64,000 nucleotides of DNA from NCBI GenBank assembly GCA_047495785.1, contig JBLDXI010000042.1:744001-808000 (forward strand), written 5' to 3'. Below the pieces are notes generated by a model that worked only from the letters and a program-made list of their open reading frames with translations, was not told the origin of the DNA and did no database searches. Below are positions 5,250-53,200 of the stretch, piece by piece. A program made the position numbers and the translations under genes. Position 1 is the stretch's first letter. Every line of letters starts with the position of its first letter. This DNA is from Lepidodermella squamata (lineage: Eukaryota; Animalia; Gastrotricha).

Positions 5250-5265
5250 AGAGACGGGAATGAGC

Positions 5266-6804
5266 TCAGTTGTCGTCATAGCGGTACGAGCCGGTGCCAT
5301 CCATCCGCTGGTCGTTGCCGCCACTGTGGAGGTCGTAGACTTCATTGGACAGGTGAGCCAACGATTCTTCGAGGTCCCTACGCCAGGCGACCTGGTTAGC
5401 GCGATCAGCCGCGACGGCGTCAGACAGGGCGTGCAGTTGTAGCTGGATATTCTTGAGCAGAGAAGAGATGCCCGCAACAGCAGCACTGAGCTGTGCAGAA
5501 GAAGACGACTCGGCGCCGGGGGGAACCACGGGACCAGAGAGAGGCGTAGCCGGCGTCGACGGCGGCGGCGGCGGCGGCGCAGCGGTGTGAGCAAAGCTGC
5601 GACCCGGGGTGACGTGGGACGACCTACCACCACCATGCCGAATGCTGGCAGCCGCGGCAAGCTTGTCGAGCTTGGCAGCAGCGTGAGCACGTCGGGATTC
5701 GATCTCAGCCGACTGGGCGGCCTTGAATGCGGGGCAGCCGCGCCAGGTGCAGAAATGCTTCGGAGCCCCGCCATCGGGACAGTTGCAGCAATGAGCTTCC
5801 GCGAGGGTTGCTTCACACTTCTCAGTAGGGTGTTTCTGAGCGCAACGGCCACACTTTACCGGGGTACCGGGCGGGCAGTCGATGGTAACATGCCCATACC
5901 GGTTGCACTTACGACACTTTGACGGCAACACAGGGGGGCGAAGAGGCCGAACTCTGACGCGTCGGTTCAACCACTTGAGGCCATTATCGCGTGCATCTTC
6001 GTAGCCTTCTTTATTCGCGAAAACAATGACCCGGGTGGGGGGACGATGGGGATTCTTTGCTGGCAAATCACGAATTTCCTCGACATAGTCAGGCGAGAGG
6101 TGGGCCCGCAGATCGTCAACAGAGTAGCAGGCCGACAGACGCGAGGTCAGCACGGTACGGTGTTCTTTCTCTACTGCAGGAGGCAAGGGACGAGTAGAAT
6201 CTGGCTCACCGGGGCGATGAACACGGTAGTTAGACCCTCTGAAGGCACCGGCGACAAGGTCCCTCTTCAGGAGGCGATCCGCTGCAGCCGGCGTGGAGCA
6301 GATGACCCGAAGGCCACCACTCCGCATGTCGACCGCCGCTTGATACTCGAGCCAGGGCGCAGCGCGAACTAGCTCGGGCTCGAGCTCACTTCGAGACATG
6401 CCAAAGACATTATCAATGATAACCACGCGTTTGCTAACAGGGTTAGACGGGGCCGGTGCTTGACGAGCCGGGCCGACAGGAGCACCACGAGGGGGCAGAG
6501 TTGGCGGCTGGTTGGTGACCGGCGGAGAAGACGACGACGCCCGAAGCGCCGGAAAATCGGCGTCGGCATCCATGCGGTCGACGGAGGACGACGGAGAGGC
6601 ATCGGCACTGCGGTGCTGTAGGATGAGTGCTTGGACCTCGGCGATGGCAGCGGCCGAGAGGCCCTTCACATTGAGTTTCCTCGGCAGCTTCGCGCCGTCA
6701 GTGGCAGACGACGGTGGGTCCGGTTTTGACTTCTTCTGCTGAATGCCCCCATCGGGCGGGCGGCTTCGGCGGCGACCGGAGGGCGGTCTGCCGTTTTCAG
6801 CCAT
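5266..6804 (-). CDS. LINE ORF1 gag-like nucleic-acid-binding protein
   Basis: Three zinc knuckles (CRKCNRYGHVTIDC, CGRCAQKHPTEKC, CCNC...H...C) after an RRM-like region; likely ATG at 6804. Confidence 0.88.
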   Translation of the reverse strand: MAENGRPPSGRRRSRPPDGGIQQKKSKPDPPSSATDGAKLPRKLNVKGLSAAAIAEVQALILQHRSADASPSSSVDRMDADADFPALRASSSSPPVTNQPPTLPPRGAPVGPARQAPAPSNPVSKRVVIIDNVFGMSRSELEPELVRAAPWLEYQAAVDMRSGGLRVICSTPAAADRLLKRDLVAGAFRGSNYRVHRPGEPDSTRPLPPAVEKEHRTVLTSRLSACYSVDDLRAHLSPDYVEEIRDLPAKNPHRPPTRVIVFANKEGYEDARDNGLKWLNRRVRVRPLRPPVLPSKCRKCNRYGHVTIDCPPGTPVKCGRCAQKHPTEKCEATLAEAHCCNCPDGGAPKHFCTWRGCPAFKAAQSAEIESRRAHAAAKLDKLAAAASIRHGGGRSSHVTPGRSFAHTAAPPPPPPSTPATPLSGPVVPPGAESSSSAQLSAAVAGISSLLKNIQLQLHALSDAVAADRANQVAWRRDLEESLAHLSNEVYDLHSGGNDQRMDGTGSYRYDDN

Positions 6805-7066
6805 ATAATCAGTAAGTAATGTGTCGCTGAATAGCACAGACGATCACCAACAATTTTAACGTAAAACTGTTAAATACTCATGGATGCCTTTCTAATTCAT
6901 GGAGACGCTTTCTACTGAAGCCAATTTACTTCGGTGAAAAAACCAAAAAAGGTGTTGAATATTGCAAAACTGAAACGAGAAGTTCAGTTTCATAACAGTG
7001 ACATGCTGTAATTTTTTCACGGCAGAAAACGCATTGTTTGTAATTTGATGATGAATGCATGCCGCC

Positions 7067-8643: not shown

Positions 8644-9699
8644 ATGAATGTGCCCTTTCTCAGAGTATTCGCTGGTTTCTTTATTGCTTTCCTGATTTTT
8701 GCATTTATTTTCGGGCATGAAAGTCAACAAATACTCTGGGGCAGCTATATCGAGCTCCATTTAACGAAGGGGAACAGTAAAACTACTACAACAGAACGAA
8801 ATCACTGTCAAATTGATTGCGATTTCGACGAATTAGACGCTTTGTTAATCGCGATAGCTTCGAGAAATTCAACAAAAATCCCGAAAATACTACATCAAAC
8901 CTGGAAAACCAGCAACACATTGCCTGAAAAGTATGCAAAATACCGGTCGAATTGGATGAAAATGCACTCGCATTGGACGCATGTGCTATGGACGGATGAA
9001 ATGAATAGGAAATTGGTCCAGCGCGGCTATCCTTGGTATTTGGACTTTTACGACAACCTTCAAGTTGGCGTCATGCGATCCGACGTAAGCCGTATTCTCT
9101 ACATGCATCGATACGGCGGGATGTACGCAGATCTCGATACTGAACCTCTCCAACCTATAGATCCTTTGATCGATCAAGCCGAGAAGCCTGTTCTGTTAGG
9201 TTATATGATGGACGTGTACAGAGATCATCACGACAAGCAGTTTCTACCAGCTTCGTTAATGTTGGCGAAACCAGGCCATCTTCTCTTTTCGATCGCGTTG
9301 TCCCAATTTCTATACCAGCGGAAAAAGTTCCCGCTACCTGGGACGAAACCCGAGTTCGTAACGGGCCCAACGGGATTTTTCAACGCAATAGAGGACTATA
9401 TGGCTGCTTACAAACAAATGACTGGGGAAGATACTGATGCCTCGCCGAAAAAGCTCTCAAATGATATCTACGACTTGAAGGTATTTCCATCGAAGGTACT
9501 CCAGCCTTACTCTTGGGCGCAGAAGGCTGAGGATATTGGCAAGGTTTGCGAGGGTCGTTCGCCTGATTTCAACGAGGATCTCTGCAAATCTAGATTTGGC
9601 AAAGAGTCGTTCACTATTCAGTATTCCAGTCAATCGTGGGAAAAGGACTGGCGCGATCATATTAGCAAACACGAACAGTTTTATCCTGATTTATTTTAA
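8644..9699 (+). CDS. GT32-family DXD glycosyltransferase (SUR1/OCH1-like), type II membrane, intronless
   Basis: N-terminal TM; IPKILHQTWK, RSDVSRILYMHRYGGMYADLD, TGP motifs; AATAAA at ~9731. Confidence 0.9.
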   Translation: MNVPFLRVFAGFFIAFLIFAFIFGHESQQILWGSYIELHLTKGNSKTTTTERNHCQIDCDFDELDALLIAIASRNSTKIPKILHQTWKTSNTLPEKYAKYRSNWMKMHSHWTHVLWTDEMNRKLVQRGYPWYLDFYDNLQVGVMRSDVSRILYMHRYGGMYADLDTEPLQPIDPLIDQAEKPVLLGYMMDVYRDHHDKQFLPASLMLAKPGHLLFSIALSQFLYQRKKFPLPGTKPEFVTGPTGFFNAIEDYMAAYKQMTGEDTDASPKKLSNDIYDLKVFPSKVLQPYSWAQKAEDIGKVCEGRSPDFNEDLCKSRFGKESFTIQYSSQSWEKDWRDHISKHEQFYPDLF

Positions 9700-10767: not shown

Positions 10768-12382
10768 ATGAAGGATTTTCAAATTTTAATGGTCGATGCA
10801 AATGGTTTCCTACCCAGTGGCGTGACTGGTTTTCAATGGCTGTTCGTTACGCTGAAAATTCTTGGCCTGATGCCCAACTGGTCTTACATAGATTGGGAAT
10901 TTAAGCCCAGCTCCCGGGGTTACAAATGCTACGTCATTTCTCTCGTTATAATTTCATGGCTGAATGGGCTAAGAATGTTCACAGTCTTCTTCACTCGAAC
11001 TCTGGCAAACACGCCTCTTTCGACCATCATCTACTACATCGTCGGGGCTATTTTCCATATGAACGCAGCTGCTGTGAGGACTACGATGGTTGTTTGTTGC
11101 TGGAGGGGCAAATTCCAACCGATTCTAGACCTGAAAGAAACAACTCAAAAGGTTAGGGAAATCGAGAGAAATCGCAAAGCTCTGTACCTTTTCATCGCGG
11201 CATGTCAATCTCTTCTGACAAATGAAGTCCTCATTTCGTCGAGTTTACTCTTGAAGAGAGACGACTACGGCTTTATGGCTTCACCTATGGACATGATAAG
11301 TAGTGATCCTGCGACCTGGGGCTGTTTTGTAGTCCCGGTTTGGATGACTTTGAGCTCCATTAGCGATGGCGGTCTCATCTTTTCGATCGGATTCTTTACA
11401 TTACTAGGCTTCACCTTAGCCGAGAATTTCCATCATCTTTCGAGGTCAGTTATACGGTACAGCAAGCGAGCTAGTTCGGTTATTTCGCCTAAAACTACTG
11501 ATGAACGAAATTTGAATGAGCGGGAATTTTTCGAACAGCTCCGCAATCAGCATTTGGTTTTAAAGCGAATGGTTCGGCATTTTGATCGACATATCAGAAT
11601 AGCCATTTTCGGTACTACAGCTCATGGTTTCGCAGCTCTAGTTATCTCGCTGTATCAAGGCGTTTGGGGTGGCGGGGTTGGGAGTGGCGCTACGTTTTTG
11701 GATGTTGTTGTATCAACTTTTTGGATCTTAGCTGCTGCAGCGAGTGTCTTGATTTTTCTGCTACCCTCAGCTTTCATCGCTCACTGGGCTGAAAATGTCA
11801 AGGAGAAACTGTTCAAGTTGAGATTGAGGTCACAAGATTCCGCTACAAATTTACAGGTACGTAAAATTCCCAATTTATAATCAAAATACTATCGAAATAC
11901 CGAACTTACCGAATTCCGGTTTTACCAGGTAATTACGTTATTTTCTTTTTCTCTTCCACATTCGAATGACTAGAGTGATAGGCAGAAGTTCAGATACAAA
12001 AATAGGCGTATCACTTCGGAATTTCGAATTTGGGTATTACCCGGTATTTTTTGGTATTTTCGATATTTTCATACTTCGAAACCATATTTGATGTAAATTC
12101 CTTCTATTCAAGCTAACAATGCTCCTCAGCCAAGTTTCTGAGCCGTGTTCTCTCCACGTGCTTGGTATGATTCCTCTTAGGAGGGAAACCCTGGCAGCGG
12201 TAATTTTCATAAAAATAGCATTATTTAATTTGATGATTTATGTTTTCCAGCTATTCGCCGCATTGCTCACATATTTTTTGATCCTCATCGACTATACAAC
12301 AGGCGACAAAACACGAATCGCCCCATCAGCTATGGATCGGCTAATTAACAATACAAGCAACCATTCGACATTTTCACATTAA
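10768..12382 (+). CDS. Gustatory receptor-like (7TM ion-channel chemoreceptor) gene 1; exons 10768-11856, 12113-12199, 12251-12382
   Basis: Multiple TM segments, N-terminal LKILGLMP, C-terminal TYFLILIDY (GR TM7 motif TYhhhhhQF-like), two phase-0 introns near the C-terminus. Confidence 0.8.
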
Positions 12383-12472: not shown

Positions 12473-13904
12473 ATGAAAATTTCCGAAATAATGAAGACTT
12501 TTCCTGAGGAACTTTCTCATAGCTACAACGATGATTTTCGATGTTTCAAGCCGTTATATTACCCGATGAAAATTCTTGGCCTTCTGCCAAACTGGCCAGT
12601 CAGAGACTGCGATACCCAGAGCTGCAAAGCCTACAAGTTTTACGCAATTTTCCTCGCAATTTTGAACTCGGTATACGCCGTCCTCCCTTTCACTGTTTTC
12701 ATATGGAGCAATGGCTCAAATACCCCGGTTTTCCGACTGCTATACCTGATGAACATGAGCTTTTACTATATGACAACATCCTCTGTTCGCTGGAACGTAT
12801 TTCGTGGTAGTTGGAAGGGTCTTTTCCTACCTGCGTTCGATATTAGAGACTGCGAACGATCACTTTGCCGCGACGAGATTTACGACATGAGCCGAACTCG
12901 GAAAATGCGTGGTTTATGGTTCCTCCTAACTGCAATCTCTGTATCGGTTACATGGGTAATTAACGTAGTTCTTGTCTCGGTTACTATGCTCGAGTACAGA
13001 ACTTCATTCGGAACCCTGGTCTCCCCACTTCATGCGCTGATAGAAGACAATTTGGCGTGGGAAATCATTTCTGTAGTATTTTTTGTAATTCGGGGAATTA
13101 TCTGCGATTCCGCCATGATGTTTGGCATCGCCTTCTTCGAAATAACAATCCTAACTATGGGTAGAAAACTGAGATTAATGGCGACCGAAGTCTCAAAATA
13201 TGCGAAGTTAACTAGCGAGAATAATGAAAGTGGGATATCTTGCTATGAAGAAAAGGAATTTTTCGAAAAAGTTCGCTATCAGCACTTAAAAATTTTGAAA
13301 ACCATTCGCCGGTTGGATCGAGATCTTCGCCCCGCGATTTTCGCTTGCGTCAGTTTCGGATTTGTCGGGCTTCTCATATATCTGTACCAGGCGATTATAA
13401 GTGAAACGAAAGACAGTACTGTCAAGAGCTTGGAGAGCTCTTGGATCTTCTACAGTATTGGAACTTTGATGGTTTTCATCGTTCCATCAGCTTATTTGAA
13501 CCACTGTGGCGAGGAGGTTCGTGAAAAGCTTTACAACTTGAAAGTTCGATCAAATGATACTCCAGCCCATATACAGGTTGGGATTTTTACCATTCGAAGT
13601 AGTCGCAGCCGTGAATAGCTAATTTATTTTGCTTCTAGCTTAATATGCTTTTGAGTCAAGTGACGACCGAATCCAGCTGTCTAACCTATATGGGCGTGAT
13701 ACCTCTCAAACAAGAAACCATTGCTGCGGTATGTATTAAAGCTCGTATGCCTACGTACTGTTACCGTTTGCTTATATCCAGCTATGTGGCGGCTTTTTGA
13801 CTTATTTCCTCATTCTTTTCGATTACACTTCGGGCGAAAAGAGTCAACTGGCTACATCGATGGTCCTCGCACGAAATGCTACGAACTCTACGTTTTCTTC
13901 ATGA
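12473..13904 (+). CDS. Gustatory receptor-like gene 2; exons 12473-13576, 13639-13728, 13782-13904
   Basis: Paralog of gene 1 (KILGLLPNW, TYFLILFDY) with the same phase-0 intron positions. Confidence 0.8.
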
Positions 13905-17729: not shown

Positions 17730-19751
17730 ATGTTGGCAAGAATTATAATTCTGACCTTGAGTTTTAATCCAGCCGAGCCACAGAGCTCAGCCTCATCGAT
17801 TGATAATCAAATTCTTGGAAATTGGCCATTATCAGCTGAATGTGGTCTCTTCGATTTCGGGCCTTGGCAAATCGAACCTGAGTGGCAGAATCCTGCTTTG
17901 AAACCGCGTTACGCCACAGGACCTAGTGGTTTAGCAAACTCCGCTATAGCCATCGGCCCTGATGATATGGACTACTTGAAATTCTCGAACCCTGTTTTGA
18001 AGTTCGCAGCAACTTCTTGGACAATCGCGTTGTTTTTCAACTCTGGCGGGGCTATGGGACCTATTGTCGAATTCGTGCAGCCTGGTTTGAGTTTTTCCCG
18101 CCATTTATGGGCAAATTTCGCAATTGATGACGGCATATACATCTGGCAGGAAGGTTTTACCACATTGGCCTGTAACATGCGAAGCTGGCAATTTGTCGCT
18201 ATGACTTATGAATCTCAAACAAATGAATACCGCCTGTTCTGCGATACTTCATTAGGCTCGCCAATAGTTCTAGACACATCGGGCTTACATAAACCTGATA
18301 CTTTTCTACTAGGAAAAAGGTTCAATTTCAGAATTTTTGAGAAAAAGGTGAAAACTTGAATTTTAATTAGGTGGGGTCAATCAGGTAATTCCTTCCAAGC
18401 ATCCTGCCTTCAAATGTATAGCAAAGCCTTGACAAGTGCAGAGCTAATTGACGTGAAGGGCCGATGTCTCAAAAGTACGGTTTCATATTTCGTATTTTCC
18501 TTGAATTTTTCGTTTTTCTTTAAAGGCTCCGTTTCTTGCAGCCAAAATCTCGAAATATCTAGGCTGACTTCGAATGTTACTTTCCCTAACATTGTGCCTA
18601 GCCCGCCTGCAGACGTCCAACTGTTGTACCCAACTGATATCAAGCCCGAAACTTCAAAGCCAGTTATAACTGCTGAAGAGCTAATGATAGCGTGCCCAGC
18701 CTTCACGCCAGACCTCACAGCCCCGCCGAACAACGATCAGACAAATCTGATCACGAACGTATTTGCCGTCGATCGATTTGTTTCCTTCGATATCGAAGAT
18801 CAAACATTGACACTGAGTGGGCTTTTCCTGCTCCAGTGGAGCGTGACGACGTGCAGGAAGAAATATTTCGGGAACAAATTTCCGCTGTTCGATTCGGCAA
18901 ACAAACGCGAGAGGGTGTTCACAACGTCACCCGACCAGGTTTGGACCCCGACTTACCTGTTCACATCCAGCTCGAACGATGTGTTCATGCGAGGCGACAC
19001 ATTCGGCGATGATCTTGTAGTCACCTTACAGACTAATCGCAATATAGCAACTCCGAATGTAACCGTCCAGTTTTTCCTCCTTCGCCGGGGATTTTACGCC
19101 TCGAAATGTCCTCTTAACTTAGCCAAATTCCCTTTCGATAGCTTGGAGTGCGATTTTGAATTCACCCTTCAAAGCTCGAAAGACCAAATTGCATTCTCGA
19201 ATTCAATTATTCTATGCCCGGAGGATCTAACTTCGACCGAGTGGTACTTTGTCTATTGTGATTTTTTTAACTCGACCTCGCCATCAGGTGGGGTGAGGGC
19301 TAGTGTTGTTACCTTTAAAATCGCCTTAACTCGAAAACCTGGCTACTACGTTGTTAACTTGATTTTCCCGAATGTTGCGCAATTTTTGCTGGAACTTGCG
19401 TCATTCTTGTTCCCAGCAGGAAGGCCGGAACGTCCCATGTTTTCTATGACCATTTTGCTATCACTGACGTTCGGACACACTAATGTTATGAGCTTAATTC
19501 CGAAAACAGCTGGGAGTGTTCTTTTAAATGAGTTCATCTTAGCTCTGTCAGCCATCTCGGCGATCATTTCGATCTATCAGCTATGGGCTAATTTAGTCTA
19601 CGAGCCTAAAGCACAGCTTAGTAAGAAATTCGGCAAGAAAATCTTCTCTGGCATCACTCTCATTCAATTTCTTGATCTATTGATGTTTTTGCTATCGCTG
19701 ATGGGGTTTATTGGTTTGGTTGCCTACTTTTTCCTGACGATCAATAAGTGA
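17730..19751 (+). CDS. Cys-loop (pentameric ligand-gated) ion channel subunit with N-terminal LamG/pentraxin-like domain
   Basis: Signal peptide; ConA/LamG-like segment (SWTIALFF, WQFVAMTYE); two short introns (~18319-18370, ~18480-18525); WTP loop A, Cys-loop CPLNLAKFPFDSLEC, RKPGYYVVNLIFP pre-M1, four TM helices. Confidence 0.88.
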
Positions 19752-24900: not shown

Positions 24901-26078
24901 GCCTGCCTTCGCCCTCTGCAAAACCGGAAACGGTATAGACGCACAAGTCGAATGAGAGGATAAATAAAAACATTATTATTATGAAATTGAAATAAAATCA
25001 AATAATTTAGATTGTCTATATACTTTTACTTCATAGATCAGAATGCAGGCGTTGATTTGGAGGGTGTCGTGCCTAATGTGGATCCGAATTGGTCCTTCAT
25101 CGCTTTATCTTACAACCGCGATACCGAGAAGTTGCTAATCGTTCATGATAACTATGTCCTCGAAGAATCAGTAACTCCTAATACGAGGCCGGTGGTTAGC
25201 ATGAAAATAAGACTCGGTGGAGATTTGGCCGGAAACAACGCGTTCAATGGCAGGCTGGCATGTTTTTCGCTCCACAAACACGCGATGTCCCTCGACCAAA
25301 TGTGGATTCTTCGCAAGAAGTGCTTTCAAATACAGCTCGGAATGGTTGTCACTATGGACGTGATAAGATCGCGATTGACCAGCTTCGTCGGTAGTTGGCC
25401 GCTGGTTTCCGATCTGAACGATCGCATCGACCTCAGAGCTGATTTTACGACTCCAAATGCAGCTCTCCGACAAGTCGCGGGGCCCTTTGGCCGGCCTAAC
25501 ACGGCTTTCTATTACAACTCAACCGATCCTATCGCCGTGAGTGCCGGAAAGATCGCGCTTAATGGCGACTTCACGATGCTTTTGTTCGTTGCTTCGGCTA
25601 AGCAGAAAGGCACAATCCTGGAATTTGCTCCCGATGAGACGAACACAGGATTCAGACTTATGGCCGATGTCAATCAAACCTTCACGCTCAGGCCGTATGG
25701 GTCAGCTGAATTAACAATTCGATGCTCTGGACCGAATGGAGTCGCATGGCATCATCTCAAGATTCTTTACGACCAAGATGAAGGAACGTTCTTCACGTGT
25801 ACAACGCGAGGTGGAGCCCAGGATATTACACTCCCCGCTCCGTTCACCATGTCAGGGTCATTCCACTTGGCAGGGTATGTATCCACTTGACGAATCAACA
25901 ACATGTTATCTAGTAAATGATTGTTGACAGATCTTGGGCTACCCCTGTCGAGCCGCTCATGGGAAGCATGGCTTGCCTGAACATTATCCGGGGTGCTCTC
26001 AATTATGCAGATTCTCCTGAAAAACAGCGAGTTTTAGAAATTTATTGTGCTGCCTTTGCGATTCCCGAATTGCTGTGA
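21904..26078 (+). CDS. Secreted protein: Cys-rich repeats + two LamG/pentraxin-like domains (many small exons)
   Basis: Signal peptide MRSIILLLVVISLTFNGQASG; Cys-rich microexons 21904-24330; LamG ORFs 24352-24750 and 25012-25890 (DISGNG, FTIAQYV, WSFIALSY, FNGRLACFSL); last exon ends CAAFAIPELL*. Confidence 0.72.
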
Positions 26079-36026: not shown

Positions 36027-36113
36027 ACCCTAACCCTAGCCCTAACCCCAGCCTAACCCTAGGCTAACCCTAACTATAACCCTAACCCTAACCCTAACCC
36101 TAACCCTAACCCT
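36027..36113 (-). repeat. Interstitial telomere-type (TTAGGG)n tract
   Basis: About 12 perfect or degenerate CCCTAA units. Confidence 0.8.
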
Positions 36114-36563: not shown

Positions 36564-39500
36564 ATGAAATCGCAATTTTTCATCCTTCTAATTCTGGCGA
36601 TTTTCCAAGATGTGTCAATCACCTCATCTAATGACGGGTCTATCCCAGAAATCTTAGATAGCATTGGCTACATTGAGGTTGACTCGAATTTCAACTTTGA
36701 CGATGCAGATCTTCTGCCAGAGTTGGCAACAAGCAAAATCGGAACTGTTGTATACAACGTCTGTTTGCAATATCGCTCGAGACTAACTTGAAATATCTGA
36801 ACTTTGATTGCAGGAATCAATCTACTTGGCTTCGTATTTTGTATCGGACATCAACTCGACGTATCTGAAACGCGTGCCTCTGCCGAACTATGCAGTGTTT
36901 AAAATCGCTTCGATTGAAGTTGACAACAAGACTGAGGCGATCGCAGACATGAAATATCGCTTCTACCCATCGATTGGCGTCTGGCAGGAACTAATTCAGA
37001 CAGAGAGAGGAATCAAGATATCCTCAGTTTTTGGCTGCACTTTCTACCCCAGCCATTCTTACTTCCATTTTATGAGCATTATAGCTGATGGCAAGTTCGT
37101 TGGTTCGTCGGTTCGATTTCATCAAAACGAAAGCTACGCCAAACTTCTGAGTGATGGCAACTATAAAGTTAAAATCAATAAAACCTTCGAGACTGTGGCT
37201 AATCAGAGATTCAGGTGAGCTATTTTTAGTTCTAATCCAGCTTATTTGCTAACCCCTCAGAATCTCAAAAACTATGACGGTTGTCGCAGACCGTGTTCCG
37301 TTCCGTCTGTCGTTAGGGAGGATAGTGGGGTCCCCCAAAACTGTGCAAGGAGGATCAGTGTGTAGTATTAAAAAATGACAGCGGGAGTTTCCCGTCAACT
37401 GTCAAAGGCCGCAGGCCGACAGTGTAAATAAGGATATAGTGATTCTATTATGTCAGGGTATCGGTGTGGTGAAATTACCGAAAAACGAGACTCAATCAAC
37501 CGTGGCGATTTTTGACAAATATTGAGTATTTCAAAATGCCAACATTCGCTAAGAATTCAACATTCAACATAATTTGATGGAAATTTGAGGAATAATGCAT
37601 TGAATGATGAGGAATTTAAGGAATCCTTAACGTGCTGAAGGCAGAAACGAGATTTCAAGGGCTGAAATAGAGGATTCCTGTTCCCACATGGTTGGTTATT
37701 TTCTTAAGAAAAACTAATTTTCCGCTCGATATCTGGATAAAATGCCCTACCACTCATACACCCATGGCGTCTGATTAAATTAATTTTGTTTGCATTTAAA
37801 AATCAACCTTAAAAAATCGTTTAACAAATTCTATTTGCTTCATTTCTTTTGTGCGTGTCAAATATCGTGCGTGTCAAATATCGTCCAGAACTGACTATTT
37901 TGATTGGCTATAAGCTCATCTCTCAGTTTAAGCGTTCAATAAAAATAGTTTTTGTTAAGATCCTGTCTTTGATTAAAATTTCGGTGTGGCTATTGGCACA
38001 TACATTATGTGCCCCTTAATGGCTATTGGCACATAACATTTTTCATTCAACTGCTTTTTTCGGGAGTTTAATTCCCAGATACCAGCATTTCAACGTTGCA
38101 TTAGCAATCTAGGGGCGGCGAATTCACTGGAATCGTCGGATTTCGCGTAACTGTGGGATAGACTTCAGATACTCTACTTGGGCTACCCATTAGATGACGG
38201 ATACCCCGATTTGCGGGCCCATGACTGCAATTTCGATATCGCCATTCGATTCCCCGTTGACGAAAACCCTAATATCAATACTCGTTGAACATTTCGATGC
38301 GTGACTTTCTAAAACATCGAAAATTGAAATTAGCGTTATGTGCCAATAGCCATTAAGAGGCACATAATTATGTGCCAATAGCAACACCCTTAAAATTTTT
38401 CTTAGCTGATGTAATCCCTTAATGGGGCCTTGTTCTTTTGGGTAATTCAGATATCTGGATTTTAGAAATGAAAAATGAAAGGTCCACCTTAAACGCGTGA
38501 GTGGGCGAAATCACCGGGCGGAAACACATTTTCCATTGAAGCAAAAAATAACCAACTTTATTTTCCATTCTAGAAAAGTCGAATTCTTCGATTCGCAGAG
38601 CGTCAGTTCCGCGACTATATGTGTAAACAGCACTTTTGCTCTTGATGGCAAACTCTCATTCGATGTGGCAATCACTTCCGAGGTTACTGAATCGGCAGTA
38701 TCCTTCCAGACTATTGATCAGTTGGCAATGGAAGCTCAAGGCGAATTGGAGTTACTGATGGCTGGATTGTTATCAGCTAGAACTTTGTTCGAAGCTCACA
38801 TCGGCGGATGGCAGGCTTATCACATTGGTGGTAGTGTCAGTGTGAAAGGGAAAGGTTTGTCTATTAAAAAATAATCATGAAGTCGTTTTCAGAAGTGCCT
38901 TCTACTTTCATCAGGACCTCAGCAAGCTGTAATAAGTAGAGCGATTCAATCCGCATACTATCAAGTTTTCAGCCAAATCGTCGCAACCTCGAGATCCAAC
39001 TTAAAACCCTCTCAGGAGGTAAGATATTTCTTTGGAGCTTCCGCGTGTGGCCTCGGCCGCGGATCATCCCGGCGCCAGTTTGGTGGACATCGAAATGTGG
39101 AGCATGACATTTTTCTCTTTCAACCTGTTGCTTGGCTCCATCATGAACTTGCGAACCAGATGATGTTGCTGCTCCCACCAACCCTCCCCGTTCTCAACAT
39201 ATACTCCTACGAAACTGTAATTAGGGATGTTAACCTAGAGGATGCGGCTCCAACTTGGTGTAAACACTGCTCAGAGCAAGGCATCTACAGCGACGGCCTC
39301 TTCAGTTTCGTCACACGAATTCTTTACTTCATCACTGGGGCAAAAACTCGTTCTGATATCTTGCTCGAAAAGAACCGCAATATGAATGAAAAATTCATCA
39401 GCGAATTATCAAAAGATAACAACAGCTTCATCTCGATTACCGGCGTTACTGGGCCGGATGAACTTCACATGTATCAGTCGAATAACCTGGTTACCAACAC

Positions 39501-42500
39501 CCTCGGCCAACTCGCAGTTCACTTCACGCAGTATCTGGCCTGCCTAAATCGAGAGCCAATCAATGACGAGTTGTTGGATAGAGCAATGCGAATAAAGTTT
39601 CCGTATGATAATAGTACGAATATCAACTATCAGTTTGATGGTTTCAATTTGAGTGATGCGATCTCCCAGGCTGATGCTCTTCTGGCTCACTTTCCAGTTG
39701 GATACAATTTCTCCGGGCGTTTCCTCGAGCAAGCCCCGCCTGAGATGCTGAGGAAGGATATTGACGTAAAATGATTTTGTATTTAGTAATAATATTTGGG
39801 ATGTAGATATAGAAGTTCAAGTTAGAAGGACCACAGAGCACCAAGTGCAAACCTAACAGGATGTAAAGTTCACGAAACCCCAGCTTCGACATTTCAACCT
39901 CTGTACAACCCAGGGTGCGATCTTCGATGCCCGAGCTCCCCGAAAAACATTTTTGGCTGTATTTGCTAATAACCGAGCGAAGCGAGAAAATCAGTGTGGA
40001 ATAACGTGGTGGGGATGGTGGATACGGTACCCGGCAGTTGGCCCTTTTTAGCCCGTACCCGCCGGGTATGACCGCAGTGCAAGCAAAATAGTTGGGAACG
40101 TCAACCAATCAGGATCATTGTTTACAGTTCACAGCCAATCAAAGCAGTTCTCGCACTGACTCCCTTTAAAACGCAGCTCGCAGCTGATTGGCCGGCTCTA
40201 ATAACTTCAGAGAGTGTGGCAGCGCACTAATGCTACTTGATATACTGCGCGCCCCCAATCCCCCTGAAAGTCGCGCACTGGAACAGCCCCATGTGGGACC
40301 CCGTGCAGCTGGCAGGGACCCGAAACAACCATCTTCCGCACCCCTTCAAACAACCAAGCCGGAAAATGGGCTCAGTTAAGATGCTTGATATAGGTTTTGT
40401 TTCTAGGATCAATTTAGTATCTGAAGCTTTATCTAATGGACATAATTCCTAATTTAGCCCCCATGAGAAGAAACAACTTTACGGAACATATGGAATATGT
40501 GCTTAATTTGAAGCGAAGTTCCAACTTAATGATAATCTCCTATTCAGCTCTTTTTGATAATCAAAAATCAAATGAAAAATTTTATATTCTGGTTTTTAGA
40601 ACTATAATCGTCGATTTGGCAGATCTTCCAATGATGGTGTTGGAATCGTAGAAATTCCTGCAACATCTCTATCAGTCAAAGCCATTCTTGAAATGCAACT
40701 GGCCACGGTGGATTCCCTAGCAACCGGTCGGAAGGATTTCGAACTCTTGCTGCAAAACTACCAATCTGGTCCGTTTATCATCTGGCGGAACGTGACTGAT
40801 GTGAAAAATGCAGCAATTGGACACACCTATACCGCAGCTGCATTTTTAGGAGTTTTAATGTTCGGATTTGGCGGGCTTCGTATAAGGAACAATCGGGTCG
40901 ATATTCAACAGCCATCGTTACCGGATGGCATTGACAGCCTTACACTGTCACAAATCGCATTTCTAGGCTACGAAATCAACTATCACGTCAATGCATCGCA
41001 TATTACCTTGTTGTCGCTAAGTGAGAACTTCAGGAAAACAACACGGCTATTCAGTCGAATGAAAAACGGGTATATTCCACTGACATCAGCTAAGGTTACG
41101 CTGGAAATCCCACCAGTGGCCGAGACGTCTGATACGACTGCGGCGATTTACTCTTTCATTGCGGATAGCAGCTCGAAATGTATTTTGGATGATCGAAACT
41201 ACAACAGCCACAACCCGTACTATTCTGTGGACGAAGCCGAGGACAATTCCAAAAAATCAGGTATCTTTAGCCAGTTCAGTGTAGGAAGGATCCTCGAAGT
41301 AGGGGTACCTTTGAGCTTCAAGTATTTACGTTCCCGAGTTTATCGGACCAAAGCAGTGCGCTAGTGGTATAGCTAGTTGTAAAGACTATAGACCCAACAC
41401 TACGTCAATGCCAAGGTGGAAAACACCAACAAGACCCTTTGGCCATATCGGGGCACGAAAACACTGCATAGTTCGGATCCTACATCGAGCTCTGAATCCC
41501 CTACATCTTGCACTGAATGGTCCCCCTTTGGGTTTTCAGGTTTTTTGTCTTCGCCACTCGAGCTGGGTAGTGCACGAAGTAGGATCCTCGAACTAGGAAG
41601 TGTTTTCGGGCCCCGATATTAAGGCCAAAGGGTCTCTCCGTGGTTTTGTTGGGGTTTCCACCTTGGCCTCGTGGCCCCCATTCCTCCCGTACGTGCACTG
41701 GAGTTGGGGGTACTGTTCCCACTACTGTTCACCCTGTTCACTGTACTGTTCACCCCCGTACTTCGAACACTGCGCCAATTATTAAAGTGTATTTGTGAAT
41801 TTTAGATTCTGGGGACGATCAACTGCTCCTGATCATTCTGACATCCGTTTTTGGCGCCATTGTCGTCATAGTCTTAGGACTTGGGTTCCTCTATCGAAAA
41901 CGGTTTCGTAAAAAGGCAGCTAGCATCGTGGCGAACAGCGATTCCAGCTACATCGTACCATTCGCAGACTTCACAAAGCTACTCGAAGGCATGGAAGGCG
42001 CACAAGATCTTATCATCCTGATCGAGCGGATCAACGTGTGCAACGACTGGCTCGAAATAACCGGCATACTGGGAACTGGCCACTACGGCGCCGTGCAACA
42101 AGCTGTTCTTCGCATGCCCGGGCAGAGCGAGCAAGACGTAGCCGTGAAGAGCATCCGGCCCGATGTTAAGTCTGATTTTGTTGGCCTTATCAAAGAAGCC
42201 CATGTTATGAAAGACTTCGACCACGAAAACGTTCTGCCGCTCATCGGAATCGCGATTCTTCACGACCAGCCGCACCTTATCGTGCCTCTCATGCAAAATG
42301 GGACTCTGAAGGAATATCTGAAGCCGAAAAGGTTGGCAGATGTTAGTTACAGCGAAAGGATGCGGTTCATCACCCAAATTTGCGATGGTATGGTGTACCT
42401 CCATTCGAGGAATTGCCTTCATCGAGATTTGGCCTGTCGTAATGTGTTGCTGTCTAGCGATTTAACGTGTAAGATTTGCGACTTTGGCCTGTCGCGAGTG

Positions 42501-43541
42501 TTGGAGCAGGAGGATGACTACTATCGAACGTCGACGGAGAATGAGTATGCTGTACCGGTCAGGTGGCACCCGCCCGAGTCTGTGATGCGGAAAATCTTTG
42601 TTCTCAAGAGCGATGTTTGGTCTTTTGGCGTTGTCGCCTGGGAAATTTTCACAAGTAAGGAAACGGAGTTCGCTAAATCTTCTAAAATACTTATTTCACC
42701 TGTTCGAAAGTTTTATTTCCCGAGAGACAAGCATAGTTCAGTTCTTTGATTAAGCAAAGGAATCCCTCCATGAGAACCAAAGCAAGAAGAAAGTTTGTTC
42801 AACCCTGAAAAATACCGAATATGCCCGAAAAAGTTACCTTCGGGTTTCCAGTTTTTCTCCAGCTTGCTCCATAAATGATGGGAACAGTGTAGGATCTTCG
42901 AACGGGGGAATATTTTCCACCCGGAACTTTTTTACAAAAGGTTCCCTTCGGTGGTTTATTCGGGTTTCCAAGCCTGGACCTTTCGAACTTGTTGACCAAA
43001 GGTTCCCTTCGGTGGTTTATTCGGGTTTCCAAGCCTGGACCTTTCGAACTTGTTGACCAAAGGTTCCCTTCGGAGGTTTATTCGGGTTTCCCAGCCTGGA
43101 CCTTTCGAACTTGTTGACCAAAGGTTCCCTTCAGTGGTTTATTCGGGTTTCTCAGCCTGGACCTTTCGAGCTGGGGGGTATGAAACCTGAAACCTTTATT
43201 ATTACCCTCTTTATTATGTAAACTGAGTGGAAATTCATGATGTTGAAGATTCAGTTAAAAGATGTTATTCTTCTAACAGACTGCGAACGCGAACCTTACG
43301 ACCAGCTTCAAGCCATGGAGGTTATTTTCAACGTTTGCCACGGTTATCGATTGCCAAAGCCAACGGCGTGCCCAGATAAAATGTGAGTATACAGAACATA
43401 TCGAACCATATTTTCTCTTAATTTTCATTTTCTAGCTACGATGATATAATGGCGAAATGCTGGCAGCAAAATCATGAAGATAGGCCGTGCTTCAAGCAGC
43501 TTCAGGAAATGTTACAAGATCAAGCATTCACCCATTGTTAA
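36564..43541 (+). CDS. Receptor tyrosine kinase with GH65/PGGHG-like glycosidase ectodomain; exons 36564-36758, 36814-37214, 38574-38854, 38915-39765, 40600-41260, 41806-42654, 43280-43382, 43436-43541 (~1148 aa)
   Basis: All seven GT-AG introns are phase compatible; signal peptide; GH65-like motifs (AYYQVFS, GASACGL...GH, GVTGPDE, SQADALL, FLGVLMFGFGGLR); TM LLLIILTSVFGAIVVIVLGLGFLY+RKRFRKK; TK motifs GTGHYG, VAVK, HRDLACRN, DFG, PVRW, SDVWSFG, CW; AATAAA at ~43591. Confidence 0.85.
37983..38388. mobile_element. MITE in RTK intron 2; a solo end of the same family lies at ~26301-26355
   Basis: TIR ggtgt(g/t)gctattggcacata...tatgtgcc(c/t)cttaatggctattggcacataac and its reverse complement. Confidence 0.75.
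41277..41772. mobile_element. Repeat/MITE with internal inverted repeat in RTK intron 5; related copy at ~10185-10325
   Basis: Inverted arms ~41410-41482 vs ~41580-41667; shared aggatc(c/t)tcgaactagg and gttcacccc(c)gtacttcg motifs with 10185-10325. Confidence 0.6.
42938..43170. repeat. 61-bp minisatellite, ~4 copies, in RTK intron 6
   Basis: Unit aaggttcccttcggtggtttattcgggtttccaagcctggacctttcgaacttgttgacca. Confidence 0.9.
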
Positions 43542-45354: not shown

Positions 45355-46362
45355 TCAGAATGTCTCAGGCCTGTAACCGTCATTTTGCGAGTCATTCGAT
45401 CCAATGAAAGCCATCCAATCGCTGCGCCAAGATTGGCTCGAATATTGAACAACAAAAGACCCAGGGAAAAGCTGTTTACAAGCCGATTCATCGAAAACCG
45501 GCGACAGCCCAGAACAAACTGGTTTGACCTTCTTGTCCTTCCACGAAAATGGATGGAGGACATTTTTCGGAAAAATTCGCAAATCGTAAATAAATTCCGA
45601 ACAATTGTACAGCGACCCGGCCGGCTCGAGCCCCGTCATTTCCCGCCTCACAGCAATGTAGCTCAAAATCGAGTTGAAAAACGCGACCGGCCCAGTAATA
45701 AAAACCGGCCTAACGTCACGCCTCGCATATTTCTCGGCCGCATATTGAAACTGGGTCAACGCGATTGAAAACAGTAAATGACCCGGTTGCGCCGCCATAA
45801 CACTCGCTGGGACGAAATTTTTATCCAAATCCTCCTCAAATTTTTCCATCATATAGCCGAGTAGGACGGGGCGCGCTTCATCGGCCAACAGGGTGTCTGA
45901 AGGCTGTAACGGCTCCGTGTCCAGATCCGCATACACCCCGCCGTAGCGGTGCATGTATAAAATTCGGCTAACGTCGGATTTCATAACGCCAACGGGCAGC
46001 GAGTCGTAGAAATTGAGGAGGTAAGGGTAGAATTTAGCGACCAGGTCACGGTTCATTGCGTCCGTCCATAACTGGTGCGACCAGGTTGGGTGAAGGTCAA
46101 GCCACGTTTTTCGGTATCTCGCGTAATTTTCCGGTAAATTATCCGAATTTTTCCAGGTTTGATGAAGAATTTTTGGAATTTTTCCGCCGAACGAGGCGGC
46201 GATTAATTTCGCATCGATCGAATCGAAATCGATTTGTTCCGAATTTCCAGGATCAAATGCTGATAATAAATAGCAAATAATTATTGTTGAGCTGATTAAA
46301 ATAATTGATATTAGAAAATTGAAGAATTTTCTTAGCTGAAAATCACTTGCGTTAAGCAACAT
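45355..46362 (-). CDS. GT32-family glycosyltransferase, intronless paralog of 8644-9699
   Basis: IPKILHQTWK, KSDVSRILYMHRYGGVYADLDTEPLQP, QYSSQSW shared with the first copy. Confidence 0.9.
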   Translation of the reverse strand: MLLNASDFQLRKFFNFLISIILISSTIIICYLLSAFDPGNSEQIDFDSIDAKLIAASFGGKIPKILHQTWKNSDNLPENYARYRKTWLDLHPTWSHQLWTDAMNRDLVAKFYPYLLNFYDSLPVGVMKSDVSRILYMHRYGGVYADLDTEPLQPSDTLLADEARPVLLGYMMEKFEEDLDKNFVPASVMAAQPGHLLFSIALTQFQYAAEKYARRDVRPVFITGPVAFFNSILSYIAVRREMTGLEPAGSLYNCSEFIYDLRIFPKNVLHPFSWKDKKVKPVCSGLSPVFDESACKQLFPGSFVVQYSSQSWRSDWMAFIGSNDSQNDGYRPETF

Positions 46363-46473
46363 TTTTTCGAATAAAAATAAAAACAAAAAATTTTATGTAG
46401 CAATTCAAGCGTGGCACGCGATTTAATTTTCGACGTGAATTCATTCATTTTTATTTTTGCTTTTCACGAAAAA

Positions 46474-50294: not shown

Positions 50295-53200
50295 TTAGTT
50301 CATGCCAGGAATTTGGAAAGCAGCGCAATTGATCTCGACAATGCGCAGCTGGCCCGAAGTGAGAACTTGATTGAAGATGTTGATGCAAGACAAACCCGTG
50401 CCAAGCTGATCTTGCGCATCTGCCCAGGATCTGACATAGGACGAACAATTGGTTATTTACGCAGTTATAGGTATAATAAACAGTTACCGCCCAATGATGA
50501 ATTGACCACTTTTCGTGATGGGCCGCTGGCCACTGCCTATCAAAAAACTCTGGCTGTCGGCATAAAAACTCAACTTGTCGCCGTCCGCATCGAACGTGAT
50601 TGCTAGAAGCAGCCAATACTGCTGCGTCGGGCAGGATATTGAAGTTGAATTTTGGCCGTATGGACGAATGCTAAACGAGTATCCTGCGGCAGTGACCTTG
50701 AGTCCCTGCGTCGTACCGTCAGGGCCGAATTCAAGTATCGGCTTGTACGATTTAATAAAACTCGGGGCAAAAAAGGAGATGGTGAAACTGCCACTGTCGA
50801 GCTTGACTTTGTCAGAAGTTACTACTATAGGATCGGTAGAGTTGTAGAGAAATGCCTTATTCGCAAAAAAAGGCCCGGCAGTTGGCGTCAGAGCCGTGTT
50901 AGGAGGTGTCGCATCGGCTCTAGGATCAACGAGATCGTTGAAATCGGACACTAGCGGCCAAAGACCGATGTTTGACGGCAGAAGGGTGTTCAATGCTTCG
51001 GGCTGCCAAGTTTTGCCGGCGTGTATTTGTGCGCACTTCTTCCTCACCATCCACAACTGTTCGGTGGATAGAGCTCGATCGAAAATTGAGACACAAGTTA
51101 GCTGTCCCGGAAGACTCGCGTTGTTGGCGAGGTTTCTGACAAATTTTATGTGATTGCTCGTAATAACTGCCGAAGAAGTGTGCTGACCAACAACTCGGTG
51201 GCAAAAATAGGTAAACATTTTGGAAATGTTATCGTATGAGACAGCGATAAAGATCCATGGCTGATATTCATCCGTTTTTCCATAGCAGAAGGTCACCATG
51301 GGTATCGCATTTGAGCCTGTCAAAATATTACTGGCTTGAATTGAATGAAAAATTATACTAATAATATGCAAATTGAGAAACAACGAGACTCAATTGAGGA
51401 AACCATAGAACAACCTTTATCTATGGAGGGACGGACCTATAAGCGATAGAAAACACGGGCTAACACATTTTAAATTTACCCGTAGTTTTACAAATCTTTC
51501 AGCTATCTTAGAACTATCCAGAGACGGACTTTGAGAGGGACTCAGTATCATTACAGTGCTCCCTCGATAAAAGCACTGGGTCGGGAGCCAGACCCGGTCT
51601 TTAAACAAGGGAAAGCTATAACGAGGGCTGTAATTGAATGCAGGAGCTAAAAATAGACCGTTGCTACGTCTTAAGACAGTTGCGATGGCAACGCGCTGAA
51701 AGAGACGGACACGGATTATGTGTAATTGCAAATTTAGCTCGCTGAAGGCTGTGAAACGATTAAGCGATGAATCATAAGTGCGTCGTAAAGTTTATTTTCC
51801 TAGTTGCCTTCAGCTTCAGTTTCCTAGAATAATTCTGAAAAACACCAGAAAATTTAGCGTAACATTTTCTAGAAGACGGAGTGTTCAATTCAGAATTCAC
51901 GCTTCGCATACATTTTTAAGAATTATTCAAAAATGACTAATTAATGTGAAAAAATGAAGATATGTTCGAAAACTTTTACGCAGCTACGCTGCCTCTTTCT
52001 TTTTTGAATTTCACTGAATTAATGGCATTGAGCGATCACGGACCTCGTAATTTCAAGGCATAAGACGTGTGGTTCCGTCAAGGGGATTCGATAGAAGATT
52101 CGATTGAATCGAATGAATTATTATCCTCTCAGGCGTGGTCTGATTTTCATTCCCTATTAAGATCAGAGCAAGTTGAAAAAATCGGGCAGAAGCTCCCGCC
52201 GCCCCTTCTCGGGATGTTGCAATTTTCAAAGTCAAAATCGAATCATAAAAAGTTGTGAAAAACCGGGAAAATTGCCAGGGCGCTGAGCAATGAAATCGTT
52301 AATTAGTGGCAGCGAGTTGCATGCTAGATCAGGCCTATCGACTTTCAAAAATCGGCTAAAATATCCAATAACTCAGGATAACTCGAACGAATGATAACGG
52401 TTTATTATGGCTTATTTGCAGACCCCCCCTAGAAAAGTGAACGACGAGAAATTCAAATTTTGCGCGTTTCTGTGTGGTTGTCACTCGAATTTAATGTTTA
52501 TTTGGAATAAATAAGAAATTTAATTTTTAAAAGCATTTTCAAAAATTAATATTAAAAGCGCGCTATTTCCTGGTCTCGTCTTCGCGGACTTAGGTGTTTT
52601 CGCCGCTCGCCGGCCGGAATCGGAGTTCCGGTCACCCAGCGCCCGGTTTTCGGGAGTTGTATCGTTCAAAGTGTAAGCACATGTTCCAAATGTTCCTTTC
52701 ATCTTCTAGTTGTTAAAAATGAAGCAGAATCAAAAGTTTTGCAAAAAACCGCTGCCGCCGCTCATACCTGTTGATTCGCGTATTCGCCATCTATTCCCTG
52801 GCGAAGTACTCGAAGATGCTAACCAAAGAGCATTCGCTTGGAGAGACGACGGTGAATTCGGACCTGTGTGGAACGTTGAGATACAGTCTAAAAGTCTGAT
52901 GTCCCTGGACGATATCGTTGAATTTTTCGAATCGAACTCCGAAGTCCGCTTCAAGAAGGAGACCCACCCAAATTCTGACCCAAAAGGGGGTCAGTTCGAA
53001 GTGGTCAAGAAACTAATTTGCAACCATGCTCCGCATGAGACGAATAAGAAAATTTCTAAGAAAATTAATGCTGCTCCCGGTGAACTCAAGCAGCAGCGAA
53101 TCCAAGAGTCGAAGATTACCGAGTGTGAAATGCGGATCGAATATCGTCGCCATTCGGTAACTAGAGGATCCAAATCGAATGATGCTAACAAGACGCGCCG

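Follow-up and report, generated by a model that had tools for sequence, protein, structure and literature searches.

The ectodomains of receptor tyrosine kinases (RTKs) define their classes, and non-catalytic enzyme folds are known to serve as extracellular recognition modules, as exemplified by the carbonic-anhydrase-like domain of the receptor-type protein tyrosine phosphatases (RPTP) gamma and zeta and by the cholinesterase-like neuroligins. Among the closest described systems, Klotho displays a glycosidase fold minus one catalytic Glu and acts as a high-affinity surface binding module for tyrosine-kinase signalling, setting the precedent of a peptide bound by a dead glycosidase pocket (PMC10229096). 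In plants, receptor-like kinases having a glycoside hydrolase family 18 (GH18) ectodomain comprise tobacco CHRK1 and about 90 others (PMC5485988). Here we describe a gene located at positions 36564–43541 of a 64-kb stretch of the genome of the gastrotrich Lepidodermella squamata (assembly GCA_047495785.1, contig JBLDXI010000042.1, C42:744001-808000; hereafter the window). Judged from its sequence, the product is a single-pass, type-I RTK, and its ectodomain has the fold of glycoside hydrolase family 65 (GH65). Taking all lines of evidence together, we consider it probable that the locus is an intact and expressed RTK gene with a dead GH65 ectodomain, that its family goes back to one fusion event, and that its ligand is bound in a rebuilt former active-site pocket.

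The gene model was rebuilt from the sequence. Eight exons were found on the + strand, each flanked by AG and GT, and the successive exon ends were in phases 0, 2, 1, 0, 1, 1, and 2 (Table 1). The joined coding sequence comprised 3447 nt with its sole stop codon at the terminus, corresponding to 1148 aa, and was shown to encode a signal peptide, the ectodomain, a single transmembrane (TM) helix, and a tyrosine kinase in this order. The signal peptide was assigned by hydropathy to the hydrophobic N-terminus (residues 1–22), and the ectodomain contained 12 N-x-S/T sequons. An initial annotation, made from the letters of the window alone, had proposed eight GT-AG exons with the same phases and a 3447-nt open reading frame (ORF), and this model was reproduced exactly; the signal peptide, the single TM helix with a basic stop-transfer, and the complete kinase with a Tyr-Tyr pair in the activation loop that it had described were also all present. 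As for the introns, intron 6 carries a 61-bp tandem repeat in four copies, and high-copy repeats reside in introns 4 and 5, where the depth amounted to 1700–2600 in the DNA-like run X2.

The TM helix spans residues 803–826 and is followed by the stop-transfer sequence RKRFRKK. In the Pfam scan, exon 6 matched PK_Tyr_Ser-Thr (PF07714) with an E-value of 3.7e-62 (210 bits vs. 127 bits for PF00069), and the match continued into exons 7 and 8. The tyrosine-kinase motifs, namely GTGHYG, VAVK, HRDLACRN, DFG, DDYYRT, and PVRWHPPE, were all intact, with Y1035 and Y1036 as the activation-loop tyrosines. In the juxtamembrane region, Tyr845 (S-Y-I-V-P) was invariant in the copies of the gene described below, within the motif [SN]-Y-x-x-P-F-A-D. 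The nearest kinases in the Protein Data Bank (PDB), including choanoflagellate RTKC8, Eph, TYRO3/MER, JAK1, and MET, all scored approximately 128–145 bits, with no family standing out. Exon 6 opens in phase 1, its coding sequence beginning with the TM helix and having its first in-frame Met downstream of this helix; because no start codon precedes the TM segment, the exon is not able to stand alone.

The homology of the ectodomain was assessed by Pfam scans of single exons and by AlphaFold (AF2) modelling followed by Foldseek comparison of exons 4 and 5 separately. Since the single-exon scans gave only sub-threshold matches to Glyco_hydro_65m (GH65m), with 22.7–24.4 bits for the exon 4 pieces of the paralogs, phmmer searches of the PDB and fold comparison were needed to recognise the GH65 relationship. 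In the phmmer search against all PDB chains, exon 4 matched those of human protein-glucosylgalactosylhydroxylysine glucosidase (PGGHG; 9sd4–9sd8) with an E-value of 7.8e-13 and maltose phosphorylase with an E-value of 1.6e-3; exon 5 alone gave no PDB match. A language-model search placed exon 4 among GH65m clusters, and local comparison with proteins obtained from the search of protein representatives described below revealed that the spliced ectodomain is collinear with GH65 proteins over residues 25–747. Furthermore, the AF2 model of exon 4 (pLDDT 79, pTM 0.80) retrieved PGGHG (9sd7/9sd4) as the top Foldseek match with an E-value of 6e-8 and a TMq of 0.71–0.74, and that of exon 5 (pLDDT 79) likewise retrieved PGGHG first, with an E-value of 7e-7 and an rmsd of 3.3 Å across approximately 175 residues. 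FjGH65A and the GH65 phosphorylases ranked below PGGHG for both models, these top matches together having a Foldseek probability of 1.00 and a TMq of 0.58–0.74, and in the exon 5 model the last barrel helices were followed by a beta-sandwich as in GH65. The barrel was thus shown to be of the GH65 type, and the ectodomain as a whole (approximately 775 aa) probably has the PGGHG-like three-domain fold of GH65. The similarity to PGGHG that the initial annotation had claimed was borne out by the phmmer match, and the pairs that it had formed for GVTGPDELH, SQAD, PFIIW, and FGFGGLR aligned as stated.

When 1.84 billion protein representatives were scanned exhaustively by HMMER with exon 4, 88 matches were obtained, of which one was close. 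This protein, P0001 (37% identity), has 796 aa and is encoded by a single ORF; the metagenome contig carrying it is eukaryote-like and has an ELO gene, and no kinase, downstream of it. No kinase fusion and no relative above 37% identity were found among the 1.84 billion representatives, from which records of this genome or its near relatives may be missing. A homologue search seeded with P0001 returned P0001 itself and one ordinary GH65 protein only, and a metagenome scan with an exon 5 profile returned one locus (L022), an ordinary GH65 at 24–30% identity with the kinase part unmatched. Within the L. squamata genome, two kinase-less GH65-like genes, C15a and C15b, were assigned to the same clade, whose members lack the catalytic base as described below; C15a passes the Pfam GH65m profile with 57 bits. 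C15a, C15b, and P0001 share with the RTK ectodomain the WRN-[x]-[ST] motif, the rebuilt pocket, an SGR[FW]LE insert, and the NYNSHN motif at 33–40% identity. C15a and P0001 differ from it in that they end directly after NYNSHN in a short hydrophobic tail resembling a glycosylphosphatidylinositol (GPI) signal in place of the TM helix and kinase, and P0001 differs further in that the general-acid Glu is also lost (Lys). A canonical PGGHG retaining the base was sought in this genome and not detected, the best matches being the base-less C15 copies and an ORF on C59. The latter is one of two GH65-like ORFs that are strongly degenerate (39.6 bits for Pfam GH65m), with erosion of each of the FWD, WES, and PDE motifs, and that have no relationship to the RTK clade.

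The genome (121 Mb, 151 contigs) was also searched with exons 4, 5, and 6 of the RTK gene. These exons were found collinear on one strand at 10 further places, namely a sister gene on C36 and nine copies on C30 including a 7-gene tandem cluster, and the family therefore comprises at least 11 copies. All eight exon pieces were found in every copy, and because the eight-exon layout is repeated in 10 further copies, it is far beyond chance. By a simple splice-site search, seven of the further copies gave intact models of 1094–1162 aa, six of them keeping the phases of the window copy; each intact paralog model possesses a signal peptide, one TM helix, and the full set of kinase motifs. With the same heuristic, junction 5 of clu5 stayed unmodelled, and the models of clu3, clu7, and C30_1186k contained junctions that deviated from the pattern. 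Two copies were damaged, clu1 by a stop in exon 4 and another by a break in the kinase. The exon 5/6 junction is also present in the solved gene models, where the cluster introns measure 43–129 nt. Most introns in the C30 cluster are 43–65 nt long, and introns 2, 4, 5, and 6 of the window copy, at 545–1359 nt vs. approximately 50 nt in the cluster, are swollen by repeat insertions.

The C36 sister and the window locus are approximately 89% identical at the nucleotide level, over a stretch that begins 2 kb upstream and reaches at least 1.6 kb downstream. Between these two genes, dS was 0.27 in the ectodomain and 0.22 in the cytoplasmic part, and dN/dS was 0.31 and 0.04, respectively; for three pairs within the cluster, the corresponding dN/dS values were 0.23–0.25 and 0.06–0.12. 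On the basis of these four unsaturated pairs, in which dS was similar in both halves, the low ratios (0.23–0.31 for the ectodomain and 0.04–0.12 for the cytoplasmic part) indicated purifying selection on both halves of the gene, with the outer half changing 3–8 times faster. The joined ectodomain, TM, and kinase gene put forward in the initial annotation was hence supported by the collinear exons in all 11 copies and by selection acting on both halves. Gene conversion was also considered as the source of the 99%-identical kinase of the C36 sister, and was rejected on the grounds that dS is alike in the two halves and that the flanks stay at approximately 89% identity throughout.

With regard to transcripts, 42 contigs of the run X1, 39 of them at an identity of at least 99%, were located on exons 3–8. 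X1 left the unique parts of introns 4, 5, and 6 uncovered, and its coverage stopped at 41260, an exon-only pattern as RNA would give, unlike DNA. One X1 contig reaches 41260 and then continues for 19 nt that represent the start of exon 6 (41806 onward), this overhang having one mismatch to the window copy and none to the C36 sister. The splice 41260/41806 was thus seen, albeit thinly, in the window/C36 gene pair, with the source copy uncertain. The initial annotation had asked for cDNA across this junction and had named transcripts ending near 41364 as the finding that would speak against a joined gene; a contig crossing the junction and a coverage that stops at 41260 were obtained, both in a run presumed to be RNA and the former with the mismatch described above.

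These data bear on two ways in which the gene model could be misleading. One is that two adjacent genes have been misjoined, namely a secreted GH65-like protein ending at approximately 41364 and a separate kinase gene. The frame of exon 5 is indeed open to 41364, and kinase-less relatives exist; however, exon 6 has neither a start codon nor a signal peptide of its own, with its first in-frame Met after the TM helix, the read-through tail of exon 5 does not have the GPI-signal character seen at the ends of C15a and P0001, the same junction is present in the solved paralog models, and X1 both crosses the junction and stops at the end of exon 5. We therefore regard a misjoined pair as scarcely credible. 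The other is that the window copy is a decaying, functionless duplicate, as might be thought from its repeat-swollen introns and from the three family copies that are damaged or unresolved (the exon 4 stop, the broken kinase, and the one unmodelled junction). Its ORF is nevertheless intact, comparison with the C36 sister (dS approximately 0.25) gives dN/dS values of 0.31 for its ectodomain and 0.04 for its kinase, and X1 contigs at an identity of at least 99% cover its exons, all of which left this explanation with a negligible probability.

GH65 hydrolases employ a general-acid Glu (E472 in FjGH65A) and a general-base Glu (E616), the latter being completely conserved among the hydrolases, and hold the glucose of subsite -1 by residues corresponding to W343, D344, K538, and Q539 of FjGH65A, which are "completely conserved" in GH65, whereas the GH65 phosphorylases bind phosphate through two consecutive Ser (PMC8626586). 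According to the PDB titles, the human PGGHG mutants E430Q and E574Q were used to trap glucose and kojibiose. In the RTK ectodomain, the general acid was found to be retained as Glu475 in GPDELH (human E430/FjGH65A E472), which is invariant in the eight intact copies. At the general-base position (human E574/FjGH65A E616), the PF..W-T-E sequence is changed into PFIIW-R-N, placing Asn640 at this position, and Asn occurs here in every copy. The W/D/K/Q set of subsite -1 is represented by Val354, Glu355, Ser543, and Gln544, Gln alone being retained, and the Trp-Glu of subsite +1 by Tyr391-Glu392, with Tyr or Phe in place of the Trp across the copies. Since the base Glu is replaced by Asn together with three of the four invariant -1 residues, the ectodomain is probably a pseudo-glycosidase without catalysis. 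Meanwhile, the position of the phosphorylase Ser-Ser is occupied by Pro-Ala (IPATSLS) as in hydrolases; a GH65 phosphorylase, considered as a candidate, was ruled out by this Pro-Ala in place of the phosphate-binding Ser-Ser.

The proposal of the initial annotation that an enzyme had been recruited to sense Glc-Gal-hydroxylysine (Hyl) or kojibiose/trehalose-type glucosides found no support in a site with the base Glu lost and Val/Glu/Ser/Gln at subsite -1. The corresponding explanation, in which a working or glucoside-specific PGGHG-type site would make the receptor a sensor of kojibiose/trehalose-type sugars or of collagen-borne Glc-alpha1,2-Gal-hydroxylysine, can draw on PGGHG being the closest solved relative, on the general-acid Glu and two residues of the KQAD motif (Gln and Asp) being retained in an invariant or nearly invariant form, and on the E574Q mutant of PGGHG, for which the PDB titles indicate retained binding of glucose and kojibiose, so that a Glu-to-Asn replacement could leave a binding-only site. 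The replacement of the -1 Trp, Asp, and Lys by Val, Glu, and Ser and of the +1 Trp by Tyr or Phe, the conserved glycosylation sequon at the base position, and the distance of 2.0 substitutions per site between the clade and real enzymes all stand against it. Because of the -1 subsite changes in particular, a ligand of the PGGHG glucoside type is unlikely, and we judge this explanation as a whole to be very unlikely. That the dead pocket still binds a specific carbohydrate, be it an alpha-glucoside or a collagen-type Glc-Gal-Hyl, also appears quite unlikely. If it were true, these receptors would be the first RTKs of animals to be controlled directly by a glycan lodged in an active site of enzymatic origin, and the 11 diverging copies would constitute a receptor panel for different sugars of food, microbes, or matrix.

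Asn640 was further revealed to be the Asn of an N-x-S/T sequon in 14 of the 14 clade members (the 11 RTK copies, C15a, C15b, and P0001), and none of the canonical GH65 enzymes aligned has a sequon at the base position. These observations bring in another explanation, in which the ectodomain serves as a scaffold: an N-glycan on Asn640 would fill the old active site, and the receptor would either bind a protein partner through another surface, in the manner of beta-Klotho and the FGF tails, or function in adhesion or constitutive dimerisation. Besides the sequon, the resemblance of the kinase-less relatives to GPI-anchored surface proteins is in line with such a role, and the 3–8 times faster evolution of the ectodomain relative to the kinase is expected for diversifying protein–protein recognition. 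Conservation of the pocket argues otherwise. Among the eight intact paralogs, whose ectodomains are 38–85% identical, of the 13 pocket-equivalent columns, eight are invariant and the remainder show only conservative changes, as compared with 22% invariant columns in the whole ectodomain (Fisher p 0.002). These values, which mark a rebuilt pocket that by its conservation is not decaying, point to a working pocket, and the scaffold explanation is thus considered unlikely.

The origin of the receptor was addressed by comparing its two halves with their relatives. Maximum-likelihood analysis recovered the eight RTK ectodomains as monophyletic (SH-aLRT 100) and nested in a clade with C15a and P0001 (support 100); a branch of 2.0 substitutions per site lies between this clade and the 30 ordinary GH65 proteins included. 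The closest kinases outside the family in the genome show 44–47% identity and the same exon 6-7-8 order; among them are genes on C31 and C46 with a similar TM-plus-kinase exon layout, whose upstream ectodomain ORFs gave no GH65 similarity and no Pfam match and which, as far as their sequences tell, represent further orphan RTK classes sharing this kinase module. C15a and C15b likely represent the ancestral form of the RTK ectodomain. The notion of a recruited enzyme in the initial annotation was also not sustained in this respect, as the catalytic losses are found in the kinase-less, GPI-signal-bearing C15a and P0001 as well; since these relatives show the same losses, the recruited protein would already have been non-catalytic. 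From the tree and the C-terminal tails, we infer a single origin by replacement of the GPI-anchor signal with a TM-plus-kinase module. Specifically, a surface-anchored GH65-like protein would have lost catalysis before the fusion, its GPI signal would have been swapped once for the TM-kinase module common to other RTKs of the genome, and the fusion gene would then have multiplied by tandem duplication.

In the proposed working of the receptor, a putative extracellular ligand, either a glycan or a peptide, would bind the rebuilt and strongly conserved former active-site pocket and thereby join two receptors or reorient a preformed dimer in the usual way of RTKs. Trans-phosphorylation of the activation-loop residues Y1035/Y1036 would follow, and the conserved juxtamembrane Tyr845 (Y-x-x-P) would become a docking site, a role that is likely because the C-terminal tail is very short.

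Several points count against this account of an expressed receptor with a dead but ligand-binding pocket. In the Pfam scan, exon 4 alone scored 21.6 bits for Glyco_hydro_65m, under the 27-bit cut-off, so that of the HMMER and AlphaFold/Foldseek outcome anticipated in the initial annotation, PK_Tyr_Ser-Thr and PGGHG as the top fold were obtained and Glyco_hydro_65m stayed below threshold. X1 is the only RNA-like public run holding the stretch and its RNA nature is presumed, and the junction contig, which is single and of low depth, may be derived from the C36 sister gene. Asn640 may be glycosylated, in which case the pocket could be plugged and the ligand could bind elsewhere. An inverting glycosidase sometimes uses another carboxylate as its base, which would make residual activity possible.

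Apart from the RTK gene, the window contains two single-ORF genes for Gly_transf_sug DXD glycosyltransferases, one of which is convergent with the RTK gene at approximately 1.8 kb downstream. Two single-exon 7tm_7 chemoreceptor-like genes in tandem, an adjoining ORF with the ligand-binding domain of Cys-loop channels, weakly matching Laminin_G_3/concanavalin-like lectin ORFs, and GC-rich LINE-type ORFs were also found. An interstitial (ACCCTA)n array of approximately 15 copies, the complement of TTAGGG, lies approximately 450 bp upstream of the start codon of the RTK gene. The array hints that the organism may use the TTAGGG telomere repeat and not the arthropod or nematode type.

Table 1. Positions of the RTK gene features, of other features in the window, and of related loci (window coordinates unless a contig is named)
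Feature	Position	Strand	Remarks
Exon 1	36564..36758	+	Residues 1–65; start codon, signal peptide, ectodomain start; exon and phase-0 end kept in paralogs
Signal peptide	36564-36629	+	
Exon 2	36814..37214	+	Residues 66–199; N-terminal GH65-like domain; aligns with P0001 start and GH65 N-terminal regions
Exon 3	38574..38854	+	Residues 199–293; end of N-terminal domain and linker
Exon 4	38915..39765	+	Residues 293–576; first two thirds of (alpha/alpha)6 barrel, remodelled pocket motifs
GGHRNVEHD (exon 4)	39082-39108	+	
YSYETV (exon 4)	39202-39219	+	
GPDELH (exon 4)	39451-39468	+	
SQAD (exon 4)	39664-39675	+	
High-copy repeat (intron 4)	39902-40067		
Exon 5	40600..41260	+	Residues 577–797; last barrel helices, then C-terminal beta-sandwich
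WRN (exon 5)	40783-40791	+	Asn640 within N-V-T sequon, 40789-40797
NYNSHNPYY (exon 5)	41197-41223	+	Clade motif
High-copy repeat (intron 5)	41562-41727		
Exon 6	41806..42654	+	Residues 797–1080; TM helix 41823-41894, RKRFRKK, Tyr845, bulk of kinase
S-Y-I-V-P (Tyr845)	41946-41972	+	
61-bp tandem repeat (intron 6)	42924-43169		
Exon 7	43280..43382	+	Residues 1080–1114; kinase C-lobe
Exon 8	43436..43541	+	Residues 1114–1148 plus stop; kinase end, very short tail
(ACCCTA)n array	36027-36113		
LINE-type ORFs	2406-6837	-	GC 57–59%; endonuclease/exonuclease/phosphatase domain; RVT_1 E 1e-13
Gly_transf_sug gene	8644-9699	+	E 1e-17
Gly_transf_sug gene	45355-46386	-	E 2e-16; convergent with RTK gene
7tm_7 gene	10768-11880		E 2e-5
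7tm_7 gene	12473-13618		E 2e-8
Neur_chan_LBD ORF	18414-19751		E 7e-8; adjoins 7tm_7 genes
Laminin_G_3 ORF	25012-25890	+	E 1e-6
Laminin_G_3 ORF	50484-51383	-	E 4e-7
C15a	C15:4761483-4763021	+	Kinase-less, GH65-like; base-less clade
C15b	C15:4775353-4776992	-	Kinase-less, GH65-like; base-less clade
C59 ORF pair	C59:170021-172593		Degenerate, GH65-like
C31 kinase	C31:845412-846254		
C46 kinase	C46:1802027-1802860		

Full-text literature searches found no paper on a fusion of GH65, ATHL1, or PGGHG with a tyrosine kinase, and such a fusion is not mentioned in the holozoan tyrosine-kinome survey (PMC8662651) or in the 2024 review of GH65 (PMC11442529). The statement of the initial annotation that no known RTK class has this ectodomain accordingly held in the literature and the protein databases searched outside this genome. 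The novelty of this RTK lies in the class of its ectodomain, the receptor kind itself being a known one. The locus offers a natural case of a pseudoenzyme turned into a receptor whose intermediate steps, namely the GPI-anchor-like proteins, the single fusion, and the tandem expansion, would still be present in one genome, and the family provides a tractable way to probe what a rebuilt glycosidase pocket recognises. Because Pfam misses the ectodomain at threshold, ordinary annotation would yield orphan kinases, and similar fusions may hide in other invertebrate genomes.

Among the known systems, PGGHG/ATHL1 (a GH65 hydrolase, PDB 9sd4–9sd8) is the best match in sequence and structure for both the barrel and the C-terminal domain, and shares with the ectodomain an apparently full-length collinearity, the general-acid Glu, and the hydrolase-type Pro-Ala. 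It differs in lacking a signal peptide, a TM helix, and a kinase and in its identity of only approximately 20–25% to the ectodomain, which for its part has Asn as the base residue, Val/Glu/Ser for Trp/Asp/Lys at subsite -1, and the 8-residue clade-specific insert SGRFLEQA. RPTP gamma/zeta and the neuroligins have other folds and other cytoplasmic parts, with a phosphatase or none. The GH18 receptor-like kinases are alike in that one TM helix connects an ectodomain of a glycosidase family to a cytoplasmic kinase, and differ in belonging to the plant kingdom, in the GH18 family, in their Ser/Thr kinase of the RLK/Pelle type, and in their independent origin. In the alpha/beta-Klotho–FGFR complex, dead glycosidase (GH1) domains likewise bind the ligand for an RTK; those domains are, however, GH1 TIM-barrels on a separate polypeptide acting in trans with FGFR, whereas here a GH65 (alpha/alpha)6 domain is fused in cis. 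An RTK class built on a complete GH65 pseudo-glycosidase would thus represent the cis-fused counterpart of Klotho–FGFR.

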